From contig NC_134470.1 in assembly GCF_964194025.1 (NCBI RefSeq), positions 65,038,001 through 65,102,000 of the forward strand: DNA of 64,000 bases, in the 5' to 3' direction. Positions 11,971 to 64,000 of the stretch are shown piece after piece. Position numbers and translations under genes: made by a program. This stretch comes from Convolutriloba macropyga (taxonomy: Eukaryota). The notes under the pieces are model-generated. The model was not told the origin of the DNA and did not search any database. It worked only from the letters and a program-made list of their open reading frames with translations. Position 1 is the first letter of the stretch. The number at the start of each line of letters is the position of its first letter.

Positions 11971-13026
11971 TTAAAACAACTCATCTTGTGTGGCCTGAAC
12001 ACTGTTCTTGCTCGACTGAACGGCAGCTTGAAATCTGGGAAAAGAATCTCGTTCCATGAGTTTGAACACGTGATCCAGTGCTTTGTCAAAACACGTTCTA
12101 TTCGGCTTACGAATTATGCTATTGGCAATTTCAAGCTTGATTTTGATGTCAACGTTTAACTCCATTGGTGAATCTTCATTGAAATATAATCCATACATTT
12201 CTATGACTCGCTTCACAAAAGATTTTCCGCTGAGCTGTTTCAGTCTCTGACAATCAAGCCAAAATTTCAAATTTTCTGTTGAGCATTCACTTTCAAGGTG
12301 TTGTTGAAACTGTTTCAAGCCTTCACTGTGGTTAAGAGTTAAAAGCAACGATGAACTCCAGTCTTGACAGCTGTCAATCAAATTTCTATTCACACCTGCT
12401 GTCACGTTTTCGATTTGGTCAGAAAATGGTTTCACGCTTAAGCTTTTGCTTTTTCCAACTGATTTCTGCAAAGATTTGGTAACGTGAGAAAATCGAAGGA
12501 GAATTGATTCGTGGAACTTTGTCTTCGAAATGGGTTTAACTGGGGTCGAGAATTCGGGTTGCCGTTCGTCGCTCGATAACTGCTCGAATGGTTGCAAATC
12601 ATCACCACTGCTTTCATCTTCAGACGAATGTTCTGGTTTCGAATGGTCGCTTTCCACAGAATAACTGCTGTTACTTTTGCCGAAATCGATTCTGTTGTCG
12701 GGCATTGCAGAGTAATCGCGTACATTTTCCTGGCAGGTCGCTTCGTTGCCTTCTTTTAAGTCAGTTGTTCCTGGTTCTTCTGTAATTATTGATGTATCTT
12801 TGAAGTGAGACATTTGTTTGGTATCAAAATGAGAGTTAGAGTCGTCGGTAATGAGAGAAGCAGCCCACCTGGACCCAGCGAGTGCTGGCCTGGAATCGGA
12901 GATTGAGGTGTCAAAGGAAGCATCGATACTGGAGTCGGAAAGATCAAAGATACTACAGAATTCTTCGTTATCGAAAAGTGCCGACCATCGGCCAATGCCT
13001 TTGTTGTGCGCCATCATACGAGGCAT
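11971..13026 (-). CDS. Regulator of G-protein signalling (RGS-domain) protein, 351 aa, single ORF
   Basis: C-terminal RGS box motifs: GLKQFQQHLESECSTENLKFW, DSPMELNVD, CFDKALDHVFKLMERDSFPRF. The N-terminus is acidic and Ser-rich. Confidence 0.92.
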   Translation of the reverse strand: MPRMMAHNKGIGRWSALFDNEEFCSIFDLSDSSIDASFDTSISDSRPALAGSRWAASLITDDSNSHFDTKQMSHFKDTSIITEEPGTTDLKEGNEATCQENVRDYSAMPDNRIDFGKSNSSYSVESDHSKPEHSSEDESSGDDLQPFEQLSSDERQPEFSTPVKPISKTKFHESILLRFSHVTKSLQKSVGKSKSLSVKPFSDQIENVTAGVNRNLIDSCQDWSSSLLLTLNHSEGLKQFQQHLESECSTENLKFWLDCQRLKQLSGKSFVKRVIEMYGLYFNEDSPMELNVDIKIKLEIANSIIRKPNRTCFDKALDHVFKLMERDSFPRFQAAVQSSKNSVQATQDELF

Positions 13027-14672
13027 GTTCTCAGCTCAAAGTTTGTTCGAAACGCGAGAGTAAGATAAAAATCAATGATAAAAGAACGAACGAAAGATTT
13101 GTGAATTCAAGGTCAGACAAGATGTCTAATTTTTGACTAATCTGACTATAATCAGGAAACTAAACGCGTTTGAGCAAATACAAATTTGTCAATTGATTAG
13201 TGAAAATTTGATCAAATTTTGGTAAAATAATTGAGATTGTAGAATTTAATTACAAAATTGGTTCGTTTTCTGATCCCAGCAGGAAAATTCAGCGGGAATT
13301 CTGATAGCTTTGAGACGATCGAATTTGTGCAATTTAATTAATCGGCCAAGTTTTTGCAAGTTAGTGCGAAGTCTATTAATAATTACTGAGATTGGAAAAT
13401 GATTTTGAAAACAGGGAAATTTCGGAGTCATATTTAGCGTGTGCCTCTTCAATTTACGGATCATACTGAGTTAATTAGTTAATGAAGTTTACTAGTTAGT
13501 TGGGGTAAACGGAAGTTTTAAGGGCGTGCTGTGAAAGGAAATCAACAAATAAAAAGCGTCCACTCTATCGCAGCTATAAAACAGGACTCAAATTAATTTG
13601 AATGAATTGAATGCGTGAAGCACACGCTGGTATAATGTTCACATCAGGCAGACAAAGTTTCTTAGTTTCACGGTTTTTGATAATGAAGATGAGATTAAAA
13701 GAAATTAAGTGACACTGGGGTATGCACGTTTTGATGCAAAGTTTCTTCAATTTTTTGTATCGGTCACTTATATGATTTTAAAAAGTTTTTTTTCTGTTAG
13801 TCCAACTTTGCAGTAATGAAAAATTAGTTCACCTTTGTCAACCATTCATCAAAATATTCTATAAATTGCAGTTTTGTTAGTCAAAATGAGGATGAAAATT
13901 TTCCCTGCAGAAATAGTCACAGCTATTTTGAGGTTAATACTAAAGCACGTTAATAAATTTTGAACGGACGTTGAAATCTGCGGTAAAGTAAGAGTTGAAG
14001 CTGAAGAAAGGAGAATATAAAAGCCACAGTTCAATAGCAGCAATAAAATTGAATGAAATTCAAAATTTTTTCTTAAAATTAGTTACTAAGCAAACTTGGT
14101 ATGTGGATTGGAACAGCTCACACATTAGATCTTTTAAAAACGGGGAACGGATGTTGCTGCAGTCAATATTTCAGGGTCATGTCTGGAAAATATGAACAAT
14201 ATTTAATAGATGAAGATATCTTAAACACTCACATTATAGGGAGTATATGATTATTTGTGATAACGTTATTGAAACAATCATAAGGTCATATAGATACTTC
14301 ATATATGTATTAATCATTCAGGATTGGAAATGTACAGCAAAGTAACTATCTATAAATAAATAGATTAAATGTGTGAAAACATTTTACACCATTTTTTAAA
14401 ATATCCAAAAAGTTGTTGATTCCCTAATCGACTGTGACGATTGACATGATCTGTCGTTGAAAACATTTCCCTCTTCCCCCGATAGATTATTACCCTCTAC
14501 AGCATTCACAATTTCTTTTAAAAATCTGTAAAATGATATATTAGAATTGTAATTGCTGCTATGCTGCCACCTGTTTTTAGGCTATACAGTTCATAATCAG
14601 AGCGAAATCACGGCATGGGTTACTCCAAATAAGCTAAGAAGATCAAAATAATTTTGATCACCAGGATGAGGT

Positions 14673-14733: not shown

Positions 14734-15111
14734 CTATACTTTTGAGATTTCAGAGTTTGTTTGATCGCTGCTTATTGTAAACCTAACGCTGTGCTGGATT
14801 TGGTTTCGGTGCTTCTGTTGTTCTCTTTCGTCCGATTCTGTAGTTTGTTGACTTCTTTGACTGTCAACAAAATCTTGACTATCAGCATCGTTTTCATGAG
14901 TAATAGTTTGTTGATTAGGTTCTGCTTGCTTTTCTACTGAAAGACCGGAGCTCGACTTTTTGGTCAAATGAATAGTTGAGTTTTCAAATTCTTTTTTCCT
15001 CTTTTTCTTCGATTGGCGCCAACTGAGGATACAAAAATACAATGCGGATGCAACGACTGTTGAAATGACAAAAGCAAGAATTAGTCCACCGATTAGTTTT
15101 TTGTTCACCAT
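14734..15111 (-). CDS. Orphan single-pass membrane protein, 125 aa
   Basis: ATG in ACAATGG context; hydrophobic segment LIGGLILAFVISTVVASALYFCIL followed by a basic cluster RQSKKKRKK; polar S/Q/E-rich tail. No family recognised. Confidence 0.65.
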   Translation of the reverse strand: MVNKKLIGGLILAFVISTVVASALYFCILSWRQSKKKRKKEFENSTIHLTKKSSSGLSVEKQAEPNQQTITHENDADSQDFVDSQRSQQTTESDEREQQKHRNQIQHSVRFTISSDQTNSEISKV

Positions 15112-15701
15112 TGTTGAGAAAAAAGAAGTTGTTTTTTGTGTGTTGTAATCAGATGACAGACGTGAAGAGAATTTAGCGGCTTAATAACGTGTGAAAACGT
15201 TTGTTGAAGAAGGAAGCTTTTTATGCTGATAAGATACAGTTAAACACACTAAATATGAGATGGAAAAATTACTTGGCAAAATTTGAGAAATTTTCCGACC
15301 TTTCCTTTAATGATCTTTTTATAGAAATATTTTGAATTAATAGTTGGGAGAAGTTGATGCTACAGGTTAAGGTATTTAGAGTAAAGTTTTGTTTAGAAAA
15401 CACATTAAGTTCAATAAATTCAGATACATCAATTTTTAGATTTATTCTGTTTACCCCTCTCCCCAGTGTTTTTTGTGCCCCGATTACAATGTATGCATTG
15501 TTATATAACACGTTACTATGTAAAAAAATAGCAGGTGTGCCAGGGGGCGTAAAAATTAAATGACCGCTAAGTTGCAGGGTGGGAGGAACAGAATAGTTTT
15601 TTTTACTGAAGCCGTAATATTTATCCATCACAATATCAGACTCTGACATAGATGTCAGTGACACAGAATATCCCATAGTCACATTTTTCCAGAGCAAGGT
15701 T

Positions 15702-16117: not shown

Positions 16118-19100
16118 CTGCAAAAGAAGCACAACGGTGCTCGTTAGAAAAAGTTAGGGTGCTCGTTGATACAAAACACATCAATATAACAGTTTGTTAT
16201 AATTCAGATAAAACTATAGAAATTAAAACTCTGGGAATTCATGCTGAGCTTGTTTTTACGATAACTTCTACAAAACGTTTGATTATAGTTACTCCTAAAG
16301 TTTTGAAATTGATATGACTGATTTTTTTTTGTCTCTATAACGTAATTTATCTTCCGTTTAATTCAAAAAAAAGCTTTGAGTACCGTAGTCAACAACTTGG
16401 AGTGTATTATGTTTTTACTTATAGTAGTCTTTATGTAAGCCGCTAAAGGCCACAAAAATTGATGGATAATAAAATTTCAGGTTTCGGAGACAATTTTCCA
16501 AAATTTAAGATGACAGTTTTGTGTTTTGCAATATATATTTTGATTTTTGGCGTTAGCATATTCAAAACAAAGTTATGATTTCTTAACTCCCTTCAATTTT
16601 CCTTCATTTTACTAGTAATGTTTTCCTTTACGTATTTTTTGCGAGTAAAAAAAGCTGTTTTTGTGAATTCCCAAATTCTTTTTTTTGTCTGAATTCTGTT
16701 ATTTGTTTGGCCTTGAAATCCAAAAAAATCGCTTGGCTCAAAATTTTGTTGTAGTATAACTGTTTATGCTAGTAGCACATGACTTTTGGGGACAAAGTTG
16801 CCATGTTATTTCGGTTATTTCGTGAGTAGACAAAATGTTCTCCGGTTAAAGTCTACCTTTTCTGATCGTGAAACCGGCTTGCAGCAGATTAGTCTGATGT
16901 TGCTTAAACTGGAGCTAGAAGTAGGGTTAAGCAGTGGTTTGTGTTCATTTAAACAAACAAATTTACAGAGACAATTAACTAATTAATCAGTAGCGTTTGT
17001 AATAGAAACAAATATAAACATGAAGATATTGATACCCAGACTCAGTGTTTCTGTTAGCTTCGAAATAATGTTGACAGAAATAAAAAGTAAAGTTATATCT
17101 GAAATTTTGTAGCCAACCCCGAAAGTTTGAGATATTTTTGCCAGAATTAACCGAATTTAAAACGAAATCAATTAAAATGTGAAAAATTAAAATATGGGGG
17201 AGAAATTGGAGCAATGTCTTACTCTCCCTTTTCCAAACTTTGTCAAGACTTTTCAAAAAAATTTTGCTAAAGAAATATTTTCATAATCCTTCAGGTCCAA
17301 TCCTATGAAAAGTTCTCTCGTGGCAGAGTGTTTATTAAAAAATATGGAAAAACTTTACTGGGAATTCCTACCACCATTGCTAATTTTTGAAATTAGTTCA
17401 GTTAAGGAAAAATTGACGCCGGGAAGGATGCCAGCTGCTTATCATATTGTTCTGTTCTCACTAATGGGGGATCTTTATACCCCTGACGAATATTTGTATT
17501 ACCCATACTATGATCATTCATAATTCCACATGAAACAAAAAAATTCTTAATCAGATATTAAGGTCTACGATTCTTAAGCCCTATGAGTGATGTTTATATA
17601 ATTAGAAAGAAAAATATATTTTCTTTGTATGATAAGTAAGAGCCGTATATGATCTTTAATGGGCTGTTAGAATTCATATTTTTAAATTCTGCTCTCTGAT
17701 GTTTTTTCTATATAGTTGGTGCTGCATTGTATCACCGATGCAACGCTATGTAGCGCTCGCAAAATGCTGCAAAAATTGTTAGAAATGACAGTTAACAGCA
17801 ATTGCGTTGTTGTGCAATAGTTAGAAAATTAGTATTTGTCTGTTGTTTTCAGCTATTTGGAATACAGGCATACTGCAAATAATCACATAAAGGAAAAAAA
17901 AACAAACAAAGTTGACGTGTCGATGTGCTGGCATCGATTTATTATAGAAAACAACATTATTCGTTCCTTTTTTTAAAAAAAATAAAATTGCTAAATTTCA
18001 TGAGACAAAAAAATTTTGCGAACTGCCTTATTTCGTTATACAAACTGTATTTCTATTTTGTTTACGTAAAAATTCCATAAATGACTAGGTATTAGTTGCC
18101 AGAAAACAATTTTTTTGGTATCAAGAAAATTTAGATTCTTATGATCCATCTTCTGCAAAGATTTCATCAAGGATATAATAATGTCCTATAAGATTCATTT
18201 AAACTATGTAATGTTTAGTATGATTATCAAAAAGCTTTTAGAGGATATTTTGCTAGTCATTGAGAAATAGAGGTTGAGAATTTTTTCAACAGGGAGCTAC
18301 TTTCACAACCATTTCAATCATTTGAGGCAATTGCTTTAAAATTAGCAAGTTTGGCTACATTATATTTATTTGTTTATATTTTTATTTGAAGATTGCAAAA
18401 TATTGATTAATTATATCATATGAAAAAATATTTAAAAAATTCTGTGTTAAATTTCGGTGCTTTTAGTTTTTATATCAGATAACAGAAAATCATTATAATT
18501 TCATATCAAGACGTTTTTCAATTATAATGGAAGCACTTATTTACGATTTCAATTTTTTTACATTGATCAAAAGCAGATGGGTAATGTTCCTTCAGCCTAA
18601 TCGTCTCTAGTTTTCTCTTATTTTCCCAAGACATGGGAATTTTGTGAACACAGAGAAAGCAACCATCAATTGAAACGGTGGAAATTGTTTAAAATTATCA
18701 TAAAATGAATAGTGTTCCAAATTATCTAACTCTCCATCTATTAATCTAATTTTTTTGTCAATTCTGTCTCAGTTGTCTTTAAGGATATTATTTGCCAAGA
18801 AATTTATGGGTTTCTTGCGTGCGTCCAGAGATTCAATGATTGGATTTGATGGCTGCTTGCTTTCAATGAGCAAGCTATCCGTCTTCATTCGAGTTGCGTG
18901 ATTAAAATTTTAGTCAAAATTCACTTAAGATAATGTCAAATTATAATGTCGAATGTCAGAACGCGTGTAGAGCTCTGATAATTGTTCGGTCAAGAAGTTA
19001 ACAACAAAAAAATGATATGTAAACTTTTCTTCAATAGTTTTGCGTGTATTAAAGGAAGATCGTTGAAAATTTTGCTGCTATAATCTTAAAACTTGGAATT

Positions 19101-23954: not shown

Positions 23955-25074
23955 CCCCAATGATTGTGGAATTTTTATCGTGTAAGGTCTGACAAATTTC
24001 TGACAAAACCATCCTGCTAATAGCCTGTAAGGGGATGCATCTTCTTATCAGATCTGATAAGACGTTTATCAGATCTTATACGATAAAAAATCCTATTATA
24101 AGATCTTACACGATAAAAATTCCTCTTATAAGATCTTACACGATAAAAATTCCTCTTATAAGATCTTACACGATAAAAATTCCTCTTATAAGATCTTACA
24201 CGATAAAAATTCCTCTTATAAGATCTTACACGATAAAAATTCCTCTTATAAGATCTTACACGATAAAAATTCCTCTTATAAGATCTTACACGATAAAAAT
24301 TCCTCTTATAAGATCTTACACGATAAAAATTCCTCTTATAAGATCTTACACGATAAAAATTCCGTCTTATCAGATCTTACACGATAAAAATTTCCTCTTA
24401 TATAAATTCCTGAAGTATGGTATATGCTCCATATTGAAGACAATTCAGAGTTGCTCTCAAGCAGTAGCCTAAAAACTACAGCATGCAACACTTAAGTGTC
24501 AGAGCAACAAAGAGAAAAATATCTTATACTGTCTTTTAAGACTTATAAGATATTGTAAAAAAAGATTATTTGAGTGGCAGGGGCTTTGTCCGAAGCGGTG
24601 ATTATCAAACAAGGCTGAAGATTTTTTTTTCAAAAACCAAAACTGGACTGCTAAGTTTAGCCATAGTACCCAGTTAGGACTCACAATAAAACTGCCGCCA
24701 AAACAGAATCAACAAGCACTTTTGTGTTTCATAATTGGTTAGCTGACTGATTATTTTTTTACTTTCATAGGACCTTGACTACGTTATACGGTTATATTGA
24801 AATAATTAAATTATGTCATATCAGATCTTACACGATAAAAATTCCGTCTTATCAGATCTTACGCGATAAAAATTCTGATAAGAGGAATGTTTATCTTATA
24901 AGATGTCTTGTCAGATCTTATACGATAAAAATTTCTCTTACCAGAATTTTTATCGTGTAAGATCCGATAAGAGGAATTTTTATCGTGTCAGATCTGATTA
25001 TATCTTACACGATAAAAATTCTTAGTCAGCATCTTGTCAGATCTTACACGATAAAAGTTCCAGAATCACTGGGG
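23955..25074. mobile_element. Non-autonomous TIR DNA transposon, family C
   Basis: ~41-bp TIR CCCCA(A/G)TGATT(G/C)TGGAA..TTTATCGTGTAAG, 2-bp TSD TG, internal minisatellite, and a palindrome at 24821-24997. Confidence 0.85.
24071..24401 (+). repeat. 30-bp minisatellite (AGATCTTACACGATAAAAATTCCTCTTATA, ~11 units)
   Basis: Eight perfect units at 24101-24340 with variant units on either side. Confidence 0.95.
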
Positions 25075-49163: not shown

Positions 49164-49343
49164 CTTGACAAACATTATTTCGTAGAGGAGTCGTGACTGG
49201 AAGTAGAGACAGAACAAGACGAATGAGCAGAACAGAAGTTTCCAGATGTTGCGCTGGTTGTTGTTCCTGGTAGGGGTCACTAAGAAAGCAGCCCCTAACC
49301 CATGCATAGCAGATTCACGAGCCCACTCAACGAAAACCTCCAT
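49164..49343 (-). CDS. DEG/ENaC channel, coding exon 1 (HG motif, TM1)
   Basis: MEVFVEWARESAMHGL contains the conserved pre-TM1 HG motif; RNIWKLLFCSFVLFCLYFQ is TM1; donor AAG/GTAGGG in phase 0. The seven exons total 1563 nt = 520 aa + stop. Confidence 0.9.
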
Positions 49344-50409
49344 TCTCTGTTTTACAAAGTTAGCTTTAAAACAAAACTTTATCGAGATTGTTTGACAAAC
49401 TCTAGACTGGACATCACAATTTTCACAAGTAATTTTGCATTGAACAAACAATCTAATTGGCCCGCTTCCTAAAAATCAAGCTAGTTCTTTTTTTAATTCG
49501 AAAAAGTGAACAAGTTTAAATAATTAGTGAAGGATTGAATAATTGAAGACCCTAAAATTGTCTCCTGAAGAAAATTACACCTGCCTCCAAATTTGAAAGA
49601 CATATTCAAGCTAGGGTCGCTATAATAAAAGAAGCGCCATTTGTTAGGGAAAAAAATGTCAAAACTCGAAATAGAAAACTTGAGCGCCCCGCATAATCAT
49701 GTCACAAAGAGGAACATAGTCTTCCTTTTGTTCACAAATGGCGACTTTATGACGTCATATAATCTGAGTGGCACTGGTGTCTGTCAAAACTTGCCTGCTC
49801 AAAGGTTCTTAAATGATTTTCGAAAGGTCTTTTTTCCAAAAATGTCTTTTTTTCGATCTTTGTTTCAACGGGATAGTCAAAAATTAGTTCCTGAGGTCGA
49901 GGAATCATTAGGACGCAAGGTAAAAAACTGCATGTAATTGCGCAGGTGAAAGCGTTTTTCACCAAAGTGAATGCACGCAAATATGGGAGATCGATACATG
50001 CAAAGAGGTACAGGGAAATTGCTTGATAATAAATAGAATACACCGCATCCATCGCAACTGATATTTTTCAAAGAAAAAAGCTTGAATTCAATTTCAATAG
50101 CAAGCATTGGTATAGTTTAAAAAAACTCGCGAAGAATTTATTGTACTCTGTTATGGCTCCTGGTCGTTGACAACAGTGACAATACTTGGTCACATCTGTC
50201 CACTTACCGTTGTGCGCGACCAAAAAATTGATGCGTTAATCGTGGACAGCAGCAACGAGCATGCAATTCGTCACACGTAATCATGGATAGAAGTAACCAG
50301 CAGGTAATTTTTTGCATGTATTTAGCCTGCAACTTTCTGCTCCAAATTTCATAACAATTGCATCACATTCAATTAAGTCAGACATAACTAATCTGTGAAT
50401 CGTTAGAAC

Positions 50410-53400
50410 GGTAGCTGCAAAGCGAAATGCCATCTCAATAGACAGCTAGTACTAGCATTTCGTAAATCCGTCAACAATTCAGCATTTTATTAATTGCGTT
50501 CTAATTGACACCTCCGTAGTTCTTAGATACTCTAAACATGTACAACATTGATGCGTAGACATTTGACATCTGTGATGATGAGTGTTGACAAGAGTTACAA
50601 AAACAGTGCAATCATTGTTCACGATTCATCAAAAAAGGCATTATTGACAAGTGTGGCGGACAATTCTAAAATTGTCGTCAAAAATTGAGCTCAATTCGAT
50701 TAGTGTCACAAGTTTCCACCCATGTTTACAACCTTAATCTTAAAACCGGATCCTGGAGAATAGCAAAATTTTCGAGTACAATTACTCAAGCAAATTTTGT
50801 TTCTGCAACGTAAGGTTAAATCAATTGTTCAAAAATTAAACAGTGAACGTATTTCAGAAAACAATTCCTTATATATTTATAAAATACAAACCTAAATCAA
50901 CTAACGCCGGATGAAAATCTTTCGAATGAACGACTGGGGCGTAATTCAGAACAAGCGCAACTCGGAAATGTTTTATTGGTGCCCCACTAGGTTTTTAACC
51001 CTTACTTCAAGGTTGTCAGCCATATTCTTTACGCTGCGCTACAACGCCTTTGTGTTTTAACTTTTCAGTTCCTAAGGTGAAAATCACAATATTCAATCAA
51101 AATGAGTTCCACTGAAACTGTATCTGCTGTTGCGAGCACTGTCTTCTTTGTAAAAAAGAATATAATTTATGAAATAGCTGTGAATATACATTGAATTGTT
51201 TAAATTTAAACTAAGCAAAAAATTTTGTGCGCTTTTTCTCAGTAAAAAACAAAATAGTCAAAAAAGAAGTAAAACAATTAGCGTTCCAGCTTTCTGATAA
51301 ATTATAATTTGGATGATAAACAAATTTGCGATTTAATTCAGTTAGGATACAGACTTGGTATGTTTGTTAAAAGTTCAGGGTCATCGAAATTTCTAAGCGT
51401 CAAACAATTTCAGCCGAAAAATACCTAGAACAAAATAGATCTCTAACATTTTGTAGAATGATTGCTCTTTTTTGGTTAATAAGAATAGAAAGTTTTTTAG
51501 AACTGATTGGAGAATGAGAAGACTTGCAGTGATTTTCAAGTTAATATGATTTGAAATCATCTCTTTTTGCCTTCCAATGACCTTCATTAACACAAAGTTA
51601 AAAACTATTGATGCGGAAACATTTGATAATTTTATTTAGATGATGGTTGATTTTGATTTTTGATACGGAAAATAAACGTCCTATCTGAAAAATTTTTTTG
51701 TTAACGCAAACGCTCTTAACTTCATGAGAAATAGATATACAATTGGCTGGTTAACGTAGCTGCAACGCGAATTTTCTTCTTAATTGACAGTTAGCACTGC
51801 AATGGTCATTTCGTAAATCCGTCAACAACTAAGCAATTTATAAATTCCGTTTTATTTGACACCGCCGTAGTACTCAGATACTCTAAGCACGAGACTTTGT
51901 GATGACGAGTGCTGACAAAAATTACATAAACAGTGCAACCATGGTTCACGTTTATTCAAAAAAAGCATGATTGACAAGTTTGGGAAAAATTCCAAAATTG
52001 TCGTCAAAAATTGAGCTCTATTCAATTAGGGTCACAATTTTCAGCTCATGTTTACAACCTTAATCTTAAAACAGGATCGTAGAGAATAGTAATTTTTTTA
52101 GTACAATTACTCAAACAAAGTTTGTTTCTGCACCATAAGGTCAAATCAATTTTTCAAAGAGTAAATAATAAAAGTTTTATCGGAAAATAATTCCTTATAT
52201 ATTTATAAAATACAAACCTAAATCAACTAACGCCGGATGAAAATCTTTCGAATGAACGACTGGGGCGTAATTCAGAACAAGCGCAACTCGGAAATGTTTT
52301 ATTGGTGCCCCACTAGGTTTTTAACCCTTACTTCAAGGTTGTCAGCCATATTCTTTACGCTGCGCTACAACGCCTTTGTGTTTTAACTTTTCAGTTCCTA
52401 AGGTGAAAATCACAATATTCAATCAAAATTAGTTCCACTGAAACTGTATCTGCTGTTGCGAGCACTGTCTTCTTTGTAAAAAAGAATATAATTTATGAAA
52501 TAGCTGTGAATATACATTGAATTGTTTAAATTTAAACTAAGCAAAAAATTTTGTGCGCTTTTTCTCAGTAAAAAACAAAATAGTCAAAAAAGAAGTAAAA
52601 CAATTAGCGTTCCAGCTTTCTGATAAATTATAATTTGGATGATAAACAAATTTGCGATTTAATTCAGTTAGGATACAGACTTGGTATGTTTGTTAAAAGT
52701 TCAGGGTCATCGAAATTTCTAAGCGTCAAACAATTTCAGCCGAAAAATACCTAGAACAAAATAGATCTCTAACATTTTGTAGAATGATTGCTCGTTTTTG
52801 GTTAATAAGAATAGAAAGTTTTTTAGAACTGACTGGAGAATGAGAAGACTTGCAGTGATTTTCAAGTTAATATGATTTGAAATCATCTCTTTTTGCCTTC
52901 CAATGACCTTCATTAACACAAAGTTAAAAACTATTGATGCGGAAACATTTGATAATTTTATTTAGATGATGGTTGATTTTGATTTTTGATACGGAAAATA
53001 AACGTCCTATCTGGAAAAACTGTTTTCTAAATTAACACAAACGCTCTTAACTTCATGAGAATTAGATATATTATTCGCTGGTCAAAATAGCTGCAAAAAA
53101 ATTTTCTTTTCAATCGACAGTTAGCACTGCAATTGTAATTTCGTAAATCCGTCAACAACTAAGCATTTTATTAATTGCGTTTTATTTGACACCATCGTAG
53201 TTCTCTGATACTCTAAGCACGTACAACATTGACGCAGAGACATTTGTGACGTTGATTGTTGACAAGAGTTACAAAAACAGTGCAACCATGGTTCGCGATT
53301 AATCAAAAGAGGCATGATTGACAACTTTGGGGAAAATTCCAAAATTGTCGTCAAAAATTGAGCTCTATTCAATTACGGTCACAATTTTCAGCTCATGTTT

Positions 53401-56400
53401 ACAACTTTGATCTTAAAACAGGATCGTAGAGAATAGTAATTTTTTTAGTACAATTACTCAAACAAAGTTTGTTTCTGCACCATAAGGTCAAATCAATTTT
53501 TCAAAGAGTAAATAATAAAAGTTTTATCGGAAAATAATCCCTTACATATTCAAAAAATACAGACCTAAACCAACTAACGTGGGATGAAAATCTCTCGAAT
53601 GAACGACTGGGGCGTAATTCAGAACAAGCGCAACTCGGAAATGTTTTATTGGTGCCCCAATAGGTTTCGAACCCTTACTTCAAGGTTGGCAGCCATATTC
53701 TTTACACTGCGCTACAACGCCTTTGTGTTTTAACTTTTCAGTTCCTAAGGTGAAAATCACAATATTCAATCAAAATGAGTTCCACTGAAACTGTATCTGA
53801 TATTGCGAGCACTGTTTTTTCGTAAATATGAATATTTAAACATTTAGCGTTCCAGCTTTTTGATAGATTTTAGTTTGAATAATTTACGATTGTGCGACTT
53901 AATTCAGTTAGAATACATACTCGGTATGTCTGTTTAAAATTCTGAGTCATCGTAGTTTCTAAGCGTCAAACAACTTCAGAAAAATACTTAACATAAAATA
54001 GGTCTTCTCTAACATTTTGTAGTGATTGCTCTTTTTTGGTTGATAACAGTAGAAATTTTTTGGAACTGATTGGAGAATGAGATGACTTGCAGGGATTTTC
54101 GAATTAATCTGATTTGAAATCACCTCTTTTTGCTTTCTTATGACCTTCGTGAAAAAAGTATAAAAAGTATCGATGAGGAAACATTTTATTATTTACTTAG
54201 ATGATGGTAGGTTTTGATCTTTGAAACAGGAAAAAAGCGTCCTATCTGAAAATTTTTTTGTTAACGCACACGCTCTTAACTTCTTGAGAAATAGATATAC
54301 AATTCGCTGGTTAATGTAGATGCAATGCAAACTTTCTTCTCAATTGACAGTTAGCACTGCATTGGTCATTTCGTAAATCCGTCAACAACTAAGCAATTTA
54401 TAAATTCCGTTTTATTTGACACCACCGTAGTACTCAGATACTCTAAGCACGAGACTTTGTGATGACGAGTGCTGACAAAAATTACATAAACAGTGCAACC
54501 ATGGTTCACGTTTATTCAAAAAAAGCATGATTGACAAGTTTGGGAAAAATTCCAAAATTGTCGTCAAAAATTGAGCTCTATTCAATTAGGGTCACAACTT
54601 TCAGCTCATGTTTACAACCTTAATCTTAAAACAGGATCCTGGAGAATAGTAAAACTTTCGAGTACAATTACTCATGTAAAGTTTGTTCCTGCACCATAAG
54701 GTTAAATCAATTGTTCAAAGAGTAAACAATAAATGTTTTTCAGAAAACAATTGCCTTTATATTCAAAAAACACAAATCTAAACCAACTAACGTCGGATGA
54801 ATTGCTCTCGAATGAATGACTGGGGCGTAGTTCAGAACAGGCGCAACTGGGAAATGTTTTATGTTTGCTCCATTAGGTTTCGAACACTTAATTCAAGGTT
54901 ATCAGCCATATTCCTTACACTGTGCTACAACCTCTTTTTTTGTTTTAACTTTTCAGTTCTTAGTGTGAAAATCACAATATTCAATCAAAATGGGTTCCAC
55001 TGAGACTGTATCTGATATTGCGAGCACTGTCTTCTTTGTAAAAAAGAATATAATTTATGAAATAGCTGTGAATATACATTGAATTGTTTAAATTTAAACT
55101 AAGCAAAAAATTTTGTGCGCTTTTTCTCAGTAAAAAACAAAATAGTCAAAAAAGAAGTAAAACAATTAGCGTTCCAGCTTTCTGATAAATTATAATTTGG
55201 ATGATAAACAAATTTGCGATTTAATTCAGTTAGGATACAGACTTGGTATGTTTGTTAAAAGTTCAGGGTCATCGAAATTTCTAAGCGTCAAACAATTTCA
55301 GCCGAAAAATACCTAGAACAAAATAGATCTCTAACATTTTGTAGAATGATTGCTCTTTTTTGGTTAATAAGAATAGAAAGTTTTTTAGAACTGATTGGAG
55401 AATGAGAAGACTTGCAGTGATTTTCAAGTTAATATGATTTGAAATCATCTCTTTTTGCCTTCCAATGACCTTCATTAACACAAAGTTAAAAACTATTGAT
55501 GCGGAAACATTTGATAATTTTATTTAGATGATGGTTGATTTTGATTTTTGATACGGAAAATAAACGTCCTATCTGAAAAATTTTTTTGTGAACGCAAACG
55601 CTCTTAACTTCATGAGAAATAGATATACAATTGGCTGGTTAACGTAGCTGCAACGCGAATTTTCTTCTTAATTGACAGTTAGCACTGCAATGGTCATTTC
55701 GTAAATCCGTCAACAACTAAGCAATTTATAAATTCCGTTTTATTTGACACCGCCGTAGTACTCAGATACTCTAAGCACGAGACTTTGTGATGACGAGTGC
55801 TGACAAAAATTACATAAACAGTGCAACCATGGTTCACGTTTATTCAAAAAAAGCATGATTGACAAGTGTGGGGACTATTCCAAAATTGTTGTCAAAAATT
55901 GAGCTCTATTCAATTACGGTCACAATTTTCAGCTCATGTTTACAACCTTAATCATAAAACAGGATCCTGGAGAATAGTAAAACTTTCGAGTACAATTACT
56001 CATGTAAAGTTTGTTCCTGCACCATAAGGTTAAATCAATTGTTCAAAGAGTAAACAATAAATGTTTTTCAGAAAACAATTGCCTTTATATTCAAAAAACA
56101 CAAATCTAAACCAACTAACGTCGGATGAATTGCTCTCGAATGAATGACTGGGGCGTAGTTCAGAACAGGCGCAACTGGGAAATGTTTTATGTTTGCTCCA
56201 TTAGGTTTCGAACACTTAATTCAAGGTTATCAGCCATATTCCTTACACTGTGCTACAACCTCTTTTTTTGTTTTAACTTTTCAGTTCTTAGTGTGAAAAT
56301 CACAATATTCAATCAAAATGGGTTCCACTGAGACTGTATCTGATATTGCAAGCACTTTTTTTGTAAATATGAATATAGTTTATGAAAAAGCTTTGAAGTA

Positions 56401-59400
56401 TTTAATTTTAAACTCAGCAAAAAAATTTTGTAAGCTATTTCTCTGTAAAAACCCAAATTGTCAAAAAGAAGTAAAACGTTTAGCGTTCCAGCTTTTTGAT
56501 AGATTGTAATTTGGATAATGTACGATTGTGCGACTTAATTTAGTTAGAATACATACTCGGTATGTCTGTTTAAAATTCTGAGTCACCGTAGTTTCTAAGC
56601 GTCAAACAACTTCAGAAAATTTTTTAACATACAATAGGTCTTCTCTAACATTTTGTAGTGATTGCTCTTTTTTGGTTGATAACAGTAGAAATTTTTTGGA
56701 ACTGATTGGAGAATGAGATGACTTGCAGGGATTTTCGAATTAATCTGATTTGAAATCACCTCTTTTTGCTTTCTTATGACCTTCGTGAAAAAAGTATAAA
56801 AAGTGTCAATGAGGAAACATTTTATTATTTACTTAGATGATGGTAGGTTTTGATCTTTGAAACAGGAAAAAAGCGTCCTATCTGAAAATTTTTTTGTTAA
56901 CGCACACGCTCTTAACTTCTTGAGAAATAGATATACAATTCGCTGGTTAATGTAGATGCAATGCAAACTTTCTTCTCAATTGACAGTTAGCACTGCATTG
57001 GTCATTTCGTAAATCCGTCAACAACTAAGCAATTTATAAATTCCGTTTTATTTGACACCACCGTAGTACTCAGATACTCTAAGCACATACAACATTGATG
57101 GGGAGACATTTGTGATAATGAGCGCTCACAAGCGTTATATAAACAGTGCAACCATGGTTCACGATTATTCAAAAAAGGCATGATTGACAAGTGTGGGGAC
57201 TGTTCCAAAATTGTCGTCAAAAATTGAGCTCATTTCGATTACGGTAACAATTTTCAGTTCATGTGTACAACCTTAATCTTAAAACAGGAAAAAGGTAAGA
57301 GCGTTTACGTTAACAAAAAAACGTTTTTCAGATAGGACGCTTTTTTCCTTAATCTTAATCTTTGAAGTTGTAAACATCAAAGATGTTTACAACTTCAAAG
57401 TGATTGCTCACTTTTGGTTCATGACAGAAGAGTTTTTTTGGAAATGATTGGAGAATGAGATGACTCTCAAGGATTTTCAAATTAATCTGAGGTATACATT
57501 GAATTGTTCAATTTTAATCTTTGAAGTTGTAAACGTCTTTGAAGTTGCTTACAACCTTAATCTTAAAAAAACCTTACTCTTTGAAGTATACATTGAATTG
57601 CTTATTTTCAAACTCAGCAAAAAAAAATTTTGTAAGCTATTTCTCAGTAAAAAACCGAATTGTCAAAAAGGAAGTAAAACATTTAGCGTTGCAGCTTTTT
57701 GATAGATGGTAATTTGGATAATGTACGATTATGCGACTTAATTCAGTTAGAACACAGACTCGGTATGTCTGTTAAAAATTCTGAGTCACCGTAGTTTCTA
57801 AGCTTTAAACAACATCAGAAAAAATACTTTGAATGAAATAGGTTTTCTCTAACATTTTGTAGTGATTGCTCTTTTTTGGTTGAAAACAATAGAAACTTTT
57901 TTGGAACTGATTGGAGAATGAGATGACTTGCAGAAATTTTCAAATTAATCTGTTTTGGAATAACTTCTTTTTGCTTTCTTATGTCCTTCGTGAAAAAATT
58001 ATAAAAAATATCGAGGCGGAAACATTTGATAATTTACTTAGATGATGGTAGGTTTTGATTTTTGAAACAAGAAAAAAGCGTCCTATCTGAAAAACTTTTT
58101 TGTTAACGCAAACGCTCTTAACTTCATGAGAAATAGATATACAATTCGCTGGTTAACGTAGCTGCAATGCGAATTTTCTTCTCAATTGACAGTTAGCACT
58201 GCAATGGTCATTTCGTAAATCCGTCAACAACTAAGCAATTTATAAATTCCGTTTTATTTGACACCACCGTAGTACTCAGATACTCTAAGCACGAACATCA
58301 TTGATGCGGAGACATTTGTGATGACGAGTGCTGACAAAAGTTACATAAACAGTGCAACCATGGTTCACGTTTATTCAAAAAAAGCATGATTGACAAGTGT
58401 GGGGACTATTCCAAAATTGTCGTCAAAAATTGAGCTCTTTTCAATTACGGTCACAATTTTCAGCTCATGTTTACAACCTTAATCTTAAAACAGGATCGTA
58501 GAGAATAGTAAGTTTTTTTTAGCACAATTACTCAAACAAAGTTTGTTTCTGCACCATAAGGTTAAATCAATTTTTCAAAGAGTAAATAATAAATGTTTTA
58601 TCGGAAAATAATTCCTTATATATTCAAAAAATACAGACCTAAACCAACTAACGTGGGATGAAAATCTCTCAAATGAACGACTGGGGCGTAATTCAGAACA
58701 AGCGCAACTCGGAAATGTTTTATTGGTGCCCCAATAGGTTTCGAACCCTTACTTCAAGGTTGGCAGCCATATTCTTTACACTGCGCTACAACGCCTTTGT
58801 GTTTTAACTTTTCAGTTCCTAAGGTGAAAATCACAATATTCAATCAAAATGAGTTCCACTGAAACTGTATCTGATATTGCGAGCACTGTTTTTTCGTAAA
58901 TATGAATATAGTTTATGAAAAAGCTTTGAAGTATTTAATTTTAAACTAAAAAAATTTTGTAAGCTATTCTAAGTAAAAAGCCAAATTGTCAAAAAGAAGT
59001 AAAACATTTAGCGTTCCAGCTTTTTGATAGATTGTAATTTGGATAATTTACGATTGCGCGACTTAATTCAGTTAGAATACATACTCGGTATGTCTGTTTA
59101 AAATTCTGAGTCACCGTAGTTTATAAGCGTCAAACAACTTCAGAAAAATACTTAACATAAAATAGGTCTTCTCTAACATTTTGTAGTGATTGCTCTTTTT
59201 TGGTTGATAACAGTAGAAATTTTTTGGAACTGATTGGAGAATGAGATGACTTGCAAGGATTTTCAAATTAATCTGATTTGTAATCACCTCTGTTTGCTTT
59301 CTAATGATCTTCGTGAAAAAAAGTATAAAGAATATCAATGCAGAAACATTTGATAATTTTACTTAGATGATGGTTGGTTTTGAACTTTGATACAGGAAAA

Positions 59401-59488
59401 AAAACGTCCTATCTGAAAAACTTTTTTTCTAAGTTAACGCAAACGCTCTTAACTTCATGAGAATTAGATATACAATTCGCTAGTCAAA
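50410..59488. repeat. Tandem array of seven ~1.2-1.35-kb units
   Basis: Marker CGTAAATCCGTCAACAA recurs at 50461, 51812, 53142, 54372, 55700, 57008 and 58214; near-identical short ORFs repeat in the ORF track. Confidence 0.95.
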
Positions 59489-59523
59489 GTATTCTTATTG
59501 CTGTCCAGAGGAAAAATTTAAAA

Positions 59524-59542
59524 TATATATATATATATATAT
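59524..59542. repeat. (TA)n microsatellite
   Basis: About 9 TA units. Confidence 0.85.
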
Positions 59543-60704
59543 TTTGTTTTTTCAGTACTCGTGGCGGAGTGATCAACAATAATTGAAAGAAAAAATAATT
59601 ATATTAGAAATATAATTATTTTTTTGTATGTTCTGTTATTTCGCCCATCATGATGCAGGAGAATTTTTGCCCAGAATGCAGGATTCCCCGAGAATTCCCA
59701 ATAAACTTCGAACCCATTATGTTTTTCAAATCTACTGGTCACTGACAACCATTAAACCGTAGCTGTTGGTTGTGGGTCTCTTGTCCCACTTCGACCCATG
59801 CTGGTTTGTTCCAGTTGACACTTAGATCGTCTAGCCTAAGAACTGTGGTTGGTTGGGACAAACGGCAATTAGCTTCACAATACTCCATAAAGCACTGAGA
59901 AATTTAAAACAAGGTCTAAATTTAACGAAAATTTTGTTGACCTTAAAAAGCGCAATACTTTTAATTAAAATTTGTGAATCCGACGGAATTTTCCAACAAT
60001 TAGCAATCAGTGTGCTTGTTACAGTTTCAGAAACCTCCAAAAATACGAAGAAACTAAATTCATGTCGACATTATTTCTGAAATGCTTTTGACAGAATTTT
60101 TAACACAAAAGGTGGAGCTTCCTTTTGCTGGATTAGATGACGAATATTTTTCAAACACTTCTACTGTTGATACACGGGCGATGAACCGACCTACTTTTTA
60201 GGTCTTGCTTTGAAACGAAATTATAACTAACTCCGCAAAATGGATTCGGAAATTATTCAAAATGCAATAGTTCATAAGCGTTTTAAACGAAAACAACAAT
60301 TATTATTTTTAGTTATTTTCATCGTTTCATTATATTTTTTATATTTCAAACTGCGTCATTTTTCAAACTCTTAACTATGTTTCCGAAATTCACTCTTATG
60401 TTGAAAAATGAGCGTAACATTTGGGTGTTTGGGTGGTCCTGTTTTGTATTCTTGTTCGTCTCAATTAGCAATAAATTATGAGAGCTAGAAGAAGATTGAA
60501 ACTGCAAATTAATAGCAACAATGTTTTTCTAGTTGAAATGAGCTGCTCTCCCGTTTTTATTTTATTGCCTCTCAAAATCTTTTATTAGGTGACATAAAAA
60601 TGAATCTAGAATCCCCATTGAGTAAATTTGCATTGAAATGAAGCTTTTATTTAACAATATTAAATTATTTGTAATTTATTGTAACTAATGTTAAATTGAA
60701 TGTT

Positions 60705-62614
60705 GTTAACAATTGTCACAATTTAATAAGAAAGAAGAAGCAACTGAAGCTTTCAAGGAATTTTCACATTTAGGTTTTATGAGAACTGGATCAGAGAACA
60801 TGACCAACATTTTCAGAGCAAAGACAAAACAACAACCCGGGAAAAAAAGTAAAGCGTTTCTATAACAGTGCACTTTAACCTACAAATACGCACAGACTTA
60901 TACTTTGATCAGGAAAACTGGATTAAGATATTATTTATTTAATTTGAGACTTTTTGGTGCAAAGAGAAAGAATTTTTGTCGGAACTCTTTTTCAAAATTT
61001 GATCGTGGCAAGGAAACTTCCATCCAAACGTAATTTCAATAGCCAGTTTGTAGTAGTTGATAACAATACATATATCTGCAATACCCTATCACAACCAATA
61101 ATTACTATCGGGTGTAAGAGTTCATCCCACCTATCCCACCCCACTTAGAATAATACCAAATAATCACAAGCGTAGTTATCGAACGATAACCGTCCCCTCT
61201 TTAGATGTCCCGATATATCATTATTAGTGTGTGTGCGTGTGTTAGTGTCGAAGTGTGTAACTTTGTGTGTGTGCTCAATTTCTAATGAATAATTGGAGGT
61301 AATGTTGTTCCCGCTTAGCATTATAGCTTCCCTGCATCAGAAAAGTGATCGCGATATTGATGAAAATCGTTCCTTGTTTCAAGTTCTTCGTTTTTGGGAA
61401 TGAAACTCATTCTTTGTGAGATTCATTTTTTCAAGGAAAAAACTTTTACTTAGCAAAACTCACTTTTTCAAGATTTGATTTTTTTTGTAACAATATCAAA
61501 ATAAATGTTAATAATTGTCACATTTTTGTAAATAAGAAAAAATAGCTGAAGTGTTTCATTGAGTATTCATTTTTTAGTATTAACAAATTTGATTAAAAGA
61601 AATTGACCACACCATTTCAACCCAGAGACCAGAAGACGACCCAGGAACTCCAAATTAATGAACAAAAGGAATGTTCAGTGATTCTAGTACAAAGCACTTC
61701 AAGCTACAAATGAGCACAAACTTATACCTTGATCACAAAATTAACCTGTCCGGACAAATCAGTCCCAGACAAAATAGTCCCAGACAAAATAGTCCCAATA
61801 AAACAGACAGAACAGTCCCAGACAAAATAGTCCCAATAAAACAGACAAAACAGTCCCAGACAAAATAGTCCCAAATTAAATATTGAAACAATTGTAAATA
61901 TAATCTACAAACAATTAACAAACATAATCTATAAGTTAAGCTTCTGAATGCGTTGTTTTTAATTGATATGAATTAAGACTAAACCAAAAACCTGTTTATA
62001 AATACATTATTAGTCAGCAACTATGTTGTAATCAGCTTAATTTTAATTCAAAGAAATACAATCATGAATACCTTAAGGGGTTTCTTTCTTCATTGATGTG
62101 CACATATTTGACTCTATCTTTAATTCGGACTATTTTGTCTGGGACTGTTTTGTCTGCTTTCTTGGGAATATTTTGTCTGGGACTGTTTTGTCTGGGAATA
62201 TTTTGTCTGGGACTGTTTTGTCTGTTCACCAAATTAACACCTTCTGGATTAAGATACCAATTAAACGATTTGAAGCCTTGATTCTGCTATTAGAAAGAAT
62301 TTTTGCGGGATATTTTTAACTTGATTCAAAACAAATTGACTGATTTGCAAACACAATTTTCCCACATTTGATCATGGCTACGAAGTTCCAATCAAATTGT
62401 ATTTTCATTTGCCAGACTGTAGCAGGTGAGCGCCGTACCTGTATCCACATTACCCTAGCATTCCCATGCATTTCTATCAGTGACAAGATATTATCACACC
62501 TATCCTATCGCACTTAAGGTAACACCCTAAAATCACAAGTTTAAGTATCGAGTGATAACCGCCCCCTCTCTAGGTCTTCCGGTATATTACTAATAGTGTT
62601 TGTGTGTTTGAGAG
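60705..62614 (+). repeat. Two old diverged direct copies of a ~570-bp unit (60705-61270 and 61510-62614)
   Basis: Shared motifs in the same order: AATTGTCACA, CTTATAC.TTGATC, CTGGATTAAGATA, GAAAGAATTTTTG, AATCACAAG, GATAACCG.CCCCTCT and a TG-rich tail. Confidence 0.6.
61746..62230. mobile_element. MITE with inverted 15-bp subterminal repeats (AGTCCCAGACAAAAT)
   Basis: Repeat clusters in opposite orientation at the two ends; flanking direct repeat AAATTAAC (61738-61745 and 62231-62238). Confidence 0.75.
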
Positions 62615-62814
62615 NNNNNNNNNNNNNNNNNNNNNNNNNNNNNNNNNNNNNNNNNNNNNNNNNNNNNNNNNNNNNNNNNNNNNNNNNNNNNNNNNNNNNN
62701 NNNNNNNNNNNNNNNNNNNNNNNNNNNNNNNNNNNNNNNNNNNNNNNNNNNNNNNNNNNNNNNNNNNNNNNNNNNNNNNNNNNNNNNNNNNNNNNNNNNN
62801 NNNNNNNNNNNNNN
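62615..62814. other. Assembly gap
   Basis: 200 N. Confidence 1.
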
Positions 62815-62874: not shown

Positions 62875-64000
62875 ATATAGTATTTTTGATCGGGTCAAGA
62901 AGTTGTTCAAATAAGTATTCTTAAAAATAGGTCTTTTTCATCGGGTCAAAAAGTTGTTGAAACCGAACCAAACTCAGTATGGAGTATCCCTTGTGTATAT
63001 AGAGTCTAAAACAAAAGAAATTATTGCTATAGCTTGTCTAGGAAAAAAGTTAGGCTGTCATACGGAAATTTGCGATTATTTCAAATAAGTAATTTTAAAA
63101 ATAGGTCTTTTTGATTAGGTCTTAAAGTTGTCCAAATTGAACCAAACTTGAGTATCCCCTTTTTATATAGAGTCTAAAGTAAAAGGAATTTTTGCTATAG
63201 CTGGCCTAGAAAGAAAGTTGGGTTTTCATACGGAAATTTGCTATTATTTCGAAGAAATTGCGATCATTGAATTTTAAAAATAGGTCTTTTTCATCGGGTC
63301 AAGGAGTTGTCCAAATCAAACTAAAATTGATATGGAGTATCCTCTATGTACCTAGTGTCTAAATCAAAAATAATTTTTGCTATATCTTGCCTAGGAAAAA
63401 AGTTGGGTTTTTATACGGAAATTTGCGAATTTCGCGAATAACGAATTTTAACTATAGTTATTTTTGATTGGGCCAAGAAGTTGTCCAAATTGAACCAAAC
63501 CTGGTATGGAGTATCCCCTGTGAATATTGAGTCTGAAACAAAAAGATTTTTTGCTATAGCTTGCCTAGGAAAAAAGTTAGTTTTTGATACGGAAATTTGC
63601 TATTATTTCAAATGAATAATTTTAAAAATAGGTCTTTTTTATCGGGTCAAGAAGTTGTTCAAATCGAACCAAACTCGGTATCGGGTATCACCAGTGTAAT
63701 TATAATGTAAAACAAAACGATTTTTTGGTATGGCTTGCCTAGGAAAAAAGTTAGTATTTCATACGGAACTTTTTGAATTTCTCGAAAAAGGAATTTTAAA
63801 AATAAGTCTTTTTCATCGGGTCAAGGAGTTGTCCAAATCGAACCAAACTTGGTATGGAGTATCCCCAGGGTAGGTGGAGCATAGGAAAGAAGGAATTTTT
63901 GATAAAGCTTGCCTAGGAAAAAAGTTAGTTTTTCATACGGAAATTTGCGAATTTCGCGATTAGCGAATTTTAAAAATAAGTCTTTTTCATCGGGTCAAGG
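62875..64000. repeat. 174-bp satellite DNA, ~6 diverged monomers running off the window
   Basis: Marker ATA(G/A)GTCTTTTT or a close variant at 62927, 63101, 63280, 63454, 63628, 63802 and 63976 (spacing 174, once 179). Confidence 0.93.

Follow-up and report, generated by a model that had tools for sequence, protein, structure and literature searches.

The window, a 64,000-nt stretch of the Convolutriloba macropyga genome, carries a DEG/ENaC channel gene on its minus strand. The ATG-bearing exon (49164-49346) begins with AGA ATG GAG right after a candidate 3' splice site AG (49348-49347) and opens with AGAATGGAG. From its ATG (49343-49341) it reads MEVFVEWARESAMHG and on into the first membrane helix, and it is followed by a donor GT (49163-49162). 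Further exons, recognised as open stretches on the same strand between 40100 and 15705, lie at 40100-39786, 36728-36528, 36330-36091, 33509-33267, 23405-23133 and 16196-15705. Of these, the last two have Pfam ASC matches: the final exon scores E = 1.6e-12 and 47.7 bits against PF00858 (cut-off 23.6), and the preceding exon E = 5e-5. The N-terminus carries the HG motif followed by a hydrophobic stretch, a layout shared by paralogues and database relatives; the relative P0001 has HF instead of HG. A second, neighbouring copy of the gene is referred to here as copy B and the one in this position as copy A.

All ten paralogous loci share the position of the ATG, which precedes the conserved HG motif by 9 to 11 residues, and five of six database hits (P0001-P0005) begin exactly at the methionine of the ATG exon (49343). 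A full library search with this exon returned those six hits, all weak, short and resembling ORF calls, which cannot reveal an upstream exon. A word search with the exon (61 aa) gave no candidate among the proteins of 34-107 aa that were eligible, and hence carries little weight. The supplementary files of the eLife paper on acoel ASICs do not include the channel protein. Nine of the ten paralogues have an AG no more than 14 nt ahead of the start ATG, compared with 48% for other ATGs at the same loci. In the channel gene the AG is 3 nt before the ATG and could serve as a cis or a spliced-leader acceptor; we treat it as a candidate acceptor only, because the polypyrimidine tract before it is poor (8/20).

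Upstream of the gene, 1,064 bp of unique DNA (49347-50410, minus strand) with 22 ATGs and a consensus donor GTAAGT (50207-50202) separate the ATG exon from a tandem array (50411-59510, minus strand). The array consists of seven head-to-tail units of 1.2-1.36 kb each, and the repeat families across 50.4-59.5 kb recur at a start-to-start spacing of 1206-1351 bp. In plus-strand coordinates the units occupy 50411-51752 (unit 1), 51753-53087 (unit 2), 53088-54315 (unit 3), 54316-55640 (unit 4), 55641-56950 (unit 5), 56951-58154 (unit 6) and 58155-59510 (unit 7). Each is composed of a segment X of about 895 bp, which holds the cassette described below, and a segment Y of about 467 bp. The units are 75-94% identical in pairwise comparison, with local blocks at 99-100%, and are mosaics that fall into two subfamilies (units 1, 2 and 4 versus units 3, 5, 6 and 7). 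Unit 6 is rearranged, lacks the cassette and contains a 41-nt palindrome (57360-57400), whose two strands each give a mir-30 match below threshold.

The cassette in the other six units reads ATG-GCT-GMY-AAC-CTT-GAA on the minus strand. In unit 1 (51000-51023) it is ATG GCT GAC AAC CTT GAA (51023-51006) followed by a GTAAGG donor (51005-51000). Unit 2 (52326-52349, GAC) likewise encodes MADNLE before GTAAGG, and units 3 (53673-53696, GCC) and 7 (58747-58770, GCC) encode MAANLE before the same donor. Units 4 (54886-54909, GAT) and 5 (56214-56237, GAT) encode MADNLE, with the donor destroyed to TTAAGT. A 22-nt motif has exactly six minus-strand occurrences (51006, 52332, 53679, 54892, 56220 and 58753), and shuffled sequences gave no match. 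The ATG is flanked by A (-3) and G (+4), and the phase-0 donor is the only GTRAG that a unit has on the strand of the gene. Upstream of the cassette, 147-317 nt are free of ATGs in the six cassette-bearing units, and a TATA-like motif occurs in only three of the seven units (1, 2 and 4). A sequence-only reading had described seven 1.3-kb units, a cassette in all but the sixth, GTAAGG in four and TTAAGT in two, and a phase-0 donor joined to a phase-0 acceptor in the frame MADNLE-R-. Repeat spacing, the motif count and direct reading bear out each of these points, the joined frame continuing as MADNLE-R-MEVF...

Several other identities for the unit were rejected. It is neither a tRNA nor another Rfam RNA, with no Rfam hit, has no ORF longer than 84 aa, and gives a fold z of +1.05, which speaks against a structured small RNA. 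It is not a spliced-leader (SL) RNA gene either: blastn against a genuine SL-5S unit gave chance matches only, and seven units at 75-94% identity contrast with 1,274 near-identical SL+GT sites.

Searched against the 1.18-Gb genome in full, the unit finds matches in the array itself and, beyond it, only in two same-strand pieces at distances of 64 and 82 kb. Together these pieces represent a single ancestral unit that lies upstream of copy B and is split by an 18-kb LTR element (935-bp ends 99.7% identical, TATAT target duplication). The unit is not a transposon or dispersed repeat: it is 5'-flanking DNA of the DEG/ENaC gene itself, present once upstream of copy B. Whether it occurred only at this locus, or was a dispersed repeat unrelated to the gene, had been a question of the sequence-only reading, and the genome matches answer it in favour of the former. 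In copy B the cassette is ATG GCT GCC GAT CTT GAA|GTACGG, so that ATG, frame and GT are all retained; an ATG lies at -64, and an AG acceptor again sits 3 nt before the ATG of the channel exon.

On either side of the array, both the proximal DNA and the distal flank (59511-61073, minus strand) are single-copy and common to A and B only; the distal flank is 92% identical to its counterpart in copy B, and searches of it found neither an ORF nor an RNA family. The best-conserved patch (49699-49798) lies outside the array, is identical to copy B at 100 of 100 positions and contains TGACGTCA. The ancestral layout places the unit at 1.06-2.4 kb from the ATG exon. A retrocopy in which the junction might be preserved was not found, the ATG exon matching at ≥98% only in copies A and B. 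Between the two copies, non-coding DNA diverges by about 9%, there are several large insertions, and homology stops sharply at A 16489 / B 66413; therefore copy B is without the last exon. Beyond A's distal flank, and before a 174-bp satellite and copy B, the scaffold has a 200-N gap (62615-62814). The comparison shows that one copy of the channel gene's upstream DNA became seven in an amplification that is young and confined to this locus.

In a first-order Markov simulation of the array unit, 27% of simulated units contained at least one ATG with an open frame and a phase-0 GTRAG by chance, and 3.3% did so when a strong Kozak context was required. The pairing of ATG and donor is suggestive, not significant, because of these rates, and its sixfold repetition adds no weight because the copies share one ancestor. 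The sequence-only reading had itself called a chance pair quite possible. Identity between A and B is 86-88% over the cassette windows versus about 90-96% in the flanks, where it reaches 100% in places; the comparison has no conservation peak at the cassette of the kind expected for a first-exon cluster under selection. The donor has been lost in two of the six cassettes. No comparable mini-exon was found in the 1.5-kb flanks of other paralogues or in the 10 kb upstream of the closest one. The same reading had thought MADNLE-like starts worth seeking in orthologues; the ten paralogues and five database relatives start at the methionine of the next exon (49343).

The genome of C. macropyga is rich in spliced-leader genes. 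A 24-nt pattern that combines the final 22 nt of the leader (31 nt in all) with GT occurs 1,274 times, mostly in arrays on C9. In four SL units that were sampled, the 31-nt leader is complete and followed by GT; the repeats measure 1.26 kb, and three of the four units also have a 5S rRNA gene. Elsewhere the leader is joined to varied sequences at more than 2,600 occurrences; it is absent from the window with up to 3 mismatches allowed. The same leader is trans-spliced to 30% of genes in S. roscoffensis, a related acoel (PMC9911081). Given the abundance of SL genes, the AG that precedes the start codon by 3 nt is at least as compatible with leader trans-splicing as with cis-splicing from the array, and trans-splicing is the most likely, putative source of a leader at the channel acceptor.

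The array can be compared with three known kinds of system. Variable-first-exon loci such as protocadherin alpha/gamma and UGT1A have large, diverged variable exons, each coding for an entire domain and with its own proven promoter, and these exons are spliced. They share with the array tandem modules upstream of shared exons, each with a possible start codon and a 5' donor that could be joined to one common acceptor, whereas the putative exon here would encode six near-identical residues and its promoter marks are inconsistent. The SL-5S arrays of the same genome (C9:23.1-23.7 Mb) likewise have a unit of about 1.26-1.3 kb and a short 5' segment followed by a GTAAG-type donor. They have no sequence similarity to the channel array, which lacks a 5S gene and comprises seven diverged copies at one gene, the SL-5S copies being near-identical and numbering more than 1,200. 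The third kind consists of macrosatellites specific to one locus and of tandemly duplicated 5' flanks, exemplified by the duplicated spacer promoters of rDNA intergenic spacers. Like the array, they consist of kilobase-sized units that arise from local unique DNA, lie upstream of a gene and are homogenised by unequal exchange, and their copy number varies between copies of the locus. The array differs in being small (seven units) and already in decay, with donor loss in two units and one unit rearranged, and any transcriptional role it has is putative.

Each unit could be a promoter with a short first exon, the donors of units 1, 2, 3 and 7 being cis-spliced to the acceptor at 49346. MADNLER or MAANLER would then be added to the channel N-terminus, and copy number would tune output. 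We regard this as somewhat unlikely. It would account for the A at -3 and G at +4, for an in-frame phase-0 GTAAGG that chance produces in only about 3% of units together with the start context, and for that donor being the sole gene-strand GTRAG per unit. The single-copy ancestor and paralogue B have the cassette as well, with the AG acceptor kept, and 147-317 ATG-free nt precede it in six A units. The ancestral distance of the unit to the ATG exon (1.06-2.4 kb) is a normal intron distance, the mean intron length in a related acoel being 2.5 kb (PMC9911081). Against this, conservation of the cassette does not rise above the neutral background, TATA-like motifs are confined to three of seven copies, copy B has the ATG at -64, two cassettes are already without a donor and one unit is without a cassette. 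Other paralogues have no similar mini-exon, the 10 kb upstream of the closest included, and the family start methionine sits in the next exon. A one-residue difference between cassettes offers no meaningful 'variable' diversity, and the abundant SL RNA genes provide the acceptor with another likely partner. The indirect evidence thus leans mildly against the cassettes as used first exons. The fullest version, in which seven working promoter/first-exon modules, four of them spliced to the shared acceptor, form a recently amplified 5' exon bank that drives the channel, strikes us as plainly unlikely; such a bank would be a copy-number-tuned precursor of variable-first-exon loci, with cis- and trans-splicing competing at the acceptor.

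The array may instead have been amplified as regulatory DNA that is not used as exons. Multiplied enhancers or promoters would raise or alter channel transcription, and transcripts starting in or beyond the array would lose it as an outron. In the ancestral arrangement the amplified piece was 1-2.4 kb ahead of the start, its orientation has been kept, and some blocks are near-identical, hence recently turned over. We nevertheless consider it rather improbable: the unit bears no regulatory mark, its A-B conservation is slightly below that of the non-amplified flanks, the best-conserved patch (49699-49798) is outside the array and unit 6 is rearranged. An assembly effect, with A and B as haplotypes scaffolded side by side (seven and one copies being allelic) or with a mis-assembled copy number, would fit the 200-N gap between A's distal flank and copy B. 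It would also fit an assembly of 1,176 Mb compared with a k-mer estimate of 867 Mb and a heterozygosity of 3.65% (PMC13650328). It is very improbable in view of the non-coding difference of about 9%, the several large insertions and the missing last exon of B, and HiFi reads can resolve units at 75-94% identity. The array itself remains real under either reading of A and B.

The explanation that we favour, with evenly balanced confidence, is an array that is neutral or affects dosage, translation from 49343 and an acceptor that receives a leader. A single-copy 1.36-kb 5' flank was amplified to seven copies after the gene duplication, and the array was built and reshuffled through unequal crossing-over and gene conversion. 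The single-copy ancestor already had the ATG-donor motif, and every copy inherited it. The cassette is most likely not the translation start of the channel, which would begin at the family-conserved ATG at 49343. The AG 3 nt upstream most likely receives a leader, the 31-nt spliced leader being the likeliest, and all DNA upstream of it, including the array, would be removed as an outron or be untranscribed flank. The array would then be neutral or at most modulate promoter or enhancer dosage. This explanation is consistent with a cassette that is under no excess constraint, its A-B identity being no better than that of the flanks. It sits less easily with the strong start context, the shared frame with the next exon and the sole gene-strand GTRAG per unit, and with the retention of ATG, frame and GT in copy B.

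If the cassettes are unused, which is the likelier case, the array is an ordinary local tandem duplication. In that case its main value is as a caution for the annotation of this genome, which is not yet annotated: short in-frame ATG-donor pairs upstream of trans-splice-type acceptors need RNA support before they are called first exons. If the cassettes are used, the locus would be a very young example of a first-exon bank in the making, with a promoter and exon 1 duplicated in tandem, and a natural test, in one acoel, of what decides whether an acceptor is joined to an upstream donor or to the spliced leader.

An array of seven head-to-tail units (50411-59510, minus strand) lies upstream of the channel gene. 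Comparison of repeat families in the window yielded start-to-start spacings of 1206-1351 bp that tile 50.4-59.5 kb, confirming the 1.3-kb tandem array proposed in the sequence-only reading; TRF missed it owing to its period limit of 500. Each unit consists of a segment X and a segment Y, the former being the site of a cassette with an ATG, codons for MADNLE or MAANLE and a splice donor. A 22-nt motif around the proposed start has six minus-strand matches in the window and none in shuffles, coinciding exactly with the six cassettes located previously. On the minus strand, the third codon is GAC in units 1 and 2 and GCC in units 3 and 7, all with a GTAAGG donor, and GAT in units 4 and 5, where GTAAGG is replaced by TTAAGT. 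Unit 6, in which a rearrangement surrounds a 41-nt palindrome (57360-57400), has no cassette. Reading the copies thus bore out the four GTAAGG and two TTAAGT variants and the cassette loss in the sixth unit. A sub-threshold mir-30 match in unit 6 appears on both strands because of the palindrome. Two subtypes make up the units in mosaic fashion, with identity reaching 100% in some blocks; this pattern is characteristic of recurrent unequal exchange and conversion.

Matches to the unit in the 1.18-Gb assembly are confined to this array and two same-strand pieces further along the same chromosome. Whether the unit is limited to this locus had been raised as a question, and apart from these pieces, which lie upstream of a second channel gene copy, it is. 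This second gene (copy B; the gene downstream of the array is copy A) was found by comparing the window with 80 kb of sequence lying to its right. Upstream of copy B, the unit is single-copy and split by an 18-kb insertion. With the insertion removed, the ancestral layout comprises a distal flank, X (~895 bp, with cassette), Y (~467 bp), 1.06 kb of proximal DNA and the ATG exon. The X-Y piece occurs seven times in copy A. Since it is single-copy at B, and both array flanks are single-copy and common to A and B only, the array is a local amplification of the channel gene’s own 5’ flank. We conclude that the upstream DNA underwent a young, locus-specific seven-fold amplification, and that the ATG-donor motif is older than this event and was carried along by it. 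A search of the unit detected no tRNA, Rfam family, ORF >84 aa or significant fold, which together with the locus-limited matches rules out a transposon, satellite family or RNA gene.

The gene downstream of the array encodes a DEG/ENaC channel. Its last two exons match Pfam ASC, and the exon at 49346-49164 encodes the HG motif and the first membrane helix. One of its introns carries a 30-nt minisatellite (24020-24376, minus strand) in which one open frame reads NFYRVRSYKR ~9 times and is probably non-coding. Two same-strand neighbors lie downstream: an open exon of 354 aa that includes an RGS domain (11974-13035, minus strand; PF00615, E = 6e-24) and a 148-aa open stretch (14737-15180, minus strand) that has a single membrane helix and whose sole Pfam match is below threshold. 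The protein encoded by the exons of copy B (C3:65104413-65152833) is 96-99% identical to that of copy A. Copy B is without the last exon, which encodes the second membrane helix, and homology stops sharply at 16489 in A and 66413 in B, adjoining minisatellite and satellite DNA. Either copy B is a duplicate that was truncated, or it stems from the assembly or from haplotypes. A satellite (3 kb, 174-bp period, ~80% identity between repeats; 62906-64000, on to C3:65103921) directly follows a 200-N scaffold gap at 62615-62814. The insertion upstream of copy B (C3:65152834-65170930) is an LTR element antisense to the channel gene, with a TATAT target-site duplication and 935-bp direct ends of 99.7% identity. 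It encodes gag, integrase and a 778-aa ORF with a match (E = 4e-43) to the viral fusion glycoprotein family Monjiviricetes_fusion of Pfam, and is a young env-bearing retroelement.

The position of the ATG, 9-11 residues ahead of the HG motif, is shared by ten paralogous loci in the genome and is also where five of six database hits begin, identifying ATG 49343 as the family start codon. A word search with the ATG exon (61 aa; eligible proteins 34-107 aa) returned no match. The 1.06-kb proximal region contains 22 ATGs, making a long unspliced 5’ UTR unlikely. Some 400 bp ahead of the ATG exon, a patch (49699-49798, minus strand) is identical between A and B at 100/100 positions against a background of ~90%. 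It holds the palindromic, CRE-like TGACGTCA and an AT-rich TATA-like run, and may be a proximal promoter or a regulatory element.

The acceptor could be served by a spliced leader (SL). Trans-splicing affects 30% of genes in S. roscoffensis, a related acoel with a published leader (PMC9911081). The same leader occurs in the C. macropyga assembly, where a 24-nt pattern (its last 22 nt plus GT) has 1,274 matches, mostly as arrays on chromosome 9. Large tandem arrays of SL RNA genes span C9:23.14-23.74 Mb. Four units in a 4.1-kb sample carry the full 31-nt leader and GT at ~1.26-kb spacing, and three of them an opposite-strand 5S rRNA gene (114-120 bits to Rfam RF00001). This is an acoel instance of the classic SL-5S linkage; spacing elsewhere is ~1.06 to 1.45 kb and more. 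The channel array bears no similarity to a genuine SL unit, ruling it out as an SL gene array, and the known leader was not found anywhere in the window. A leader 32-mer also occurs at >2,600 other places on all chromosomes, followed by varied sequences instead of GT; three of six copies sampled on chromosome 1 share an identical continuation. These copies look like retro-copied trans-spliced RNAs, perhaps from a retroelement with a trans-spliced transcript. No retrocopy of the channel gene able to preserve the exon junction was found in the genome. Trans-spliced genes usually carry an acceptor just a few bases upstream of the start codon, as established in nematodes. Among the channel paralogues, 9 of 10 loci (about 8 of them independent) have an AG within 14 nt of the conserved ATG, compared with 48% of other ATGs.

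Genuine use of one or more cassettes as a cis-spliced first exon is possible, though doubtful. The claimed reading frame is correct, as the donor is phase 0 and AG 49348-49347 is followed by AGA ATG GAG. The start context is strong and in frame with the next exon, and the cassette’s GTRAG is the sole one on the gene strand of the unit. An ATG, open frame and phase-0 GTRAG arise in 27% of simulated units, or 3.3% if strong context is required. Copy B retains ATG GCT GCC GAT CTT GAA|GTACGG and also keeps an AG three bases upstream of the start codon in its ATG exon. However, A-B identity is ~90% across the upstream regions and 86-88%, if anything below the flanks, in the cassette windows, so retention in B is the neutral prediction. 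The consensus GTAAGT at 50207-50202, in unique proximal DNA outside the array, indicates that candidate donors are not scarce. TATA-like motifs accompany only three of seven copies, an ATG precedes the copy B cassette by 64 nt, and no other paralogue has such a mini-exon (1.5-kb flanks covered, 10 kb for the closest). If used, the cassette would lengthen the protein by only seven residues, with variants differing by one.

Amplification of a regulatory module without exon use is a less probable explanation. A side-by-side placement of two haplotypes as A and B is improbable, even with the scaffold gap between them and an assembly 36% larger than the k-mer size estimate (PMC13650328). We infer, at roughly even odds, that the duplication forming the array is neutral or mildly regulatory, in which case translation of the channel would start at 49343, not in the cassette, and the 5’ end would be formed at AG 49347-8, most likely by a spliced leader.
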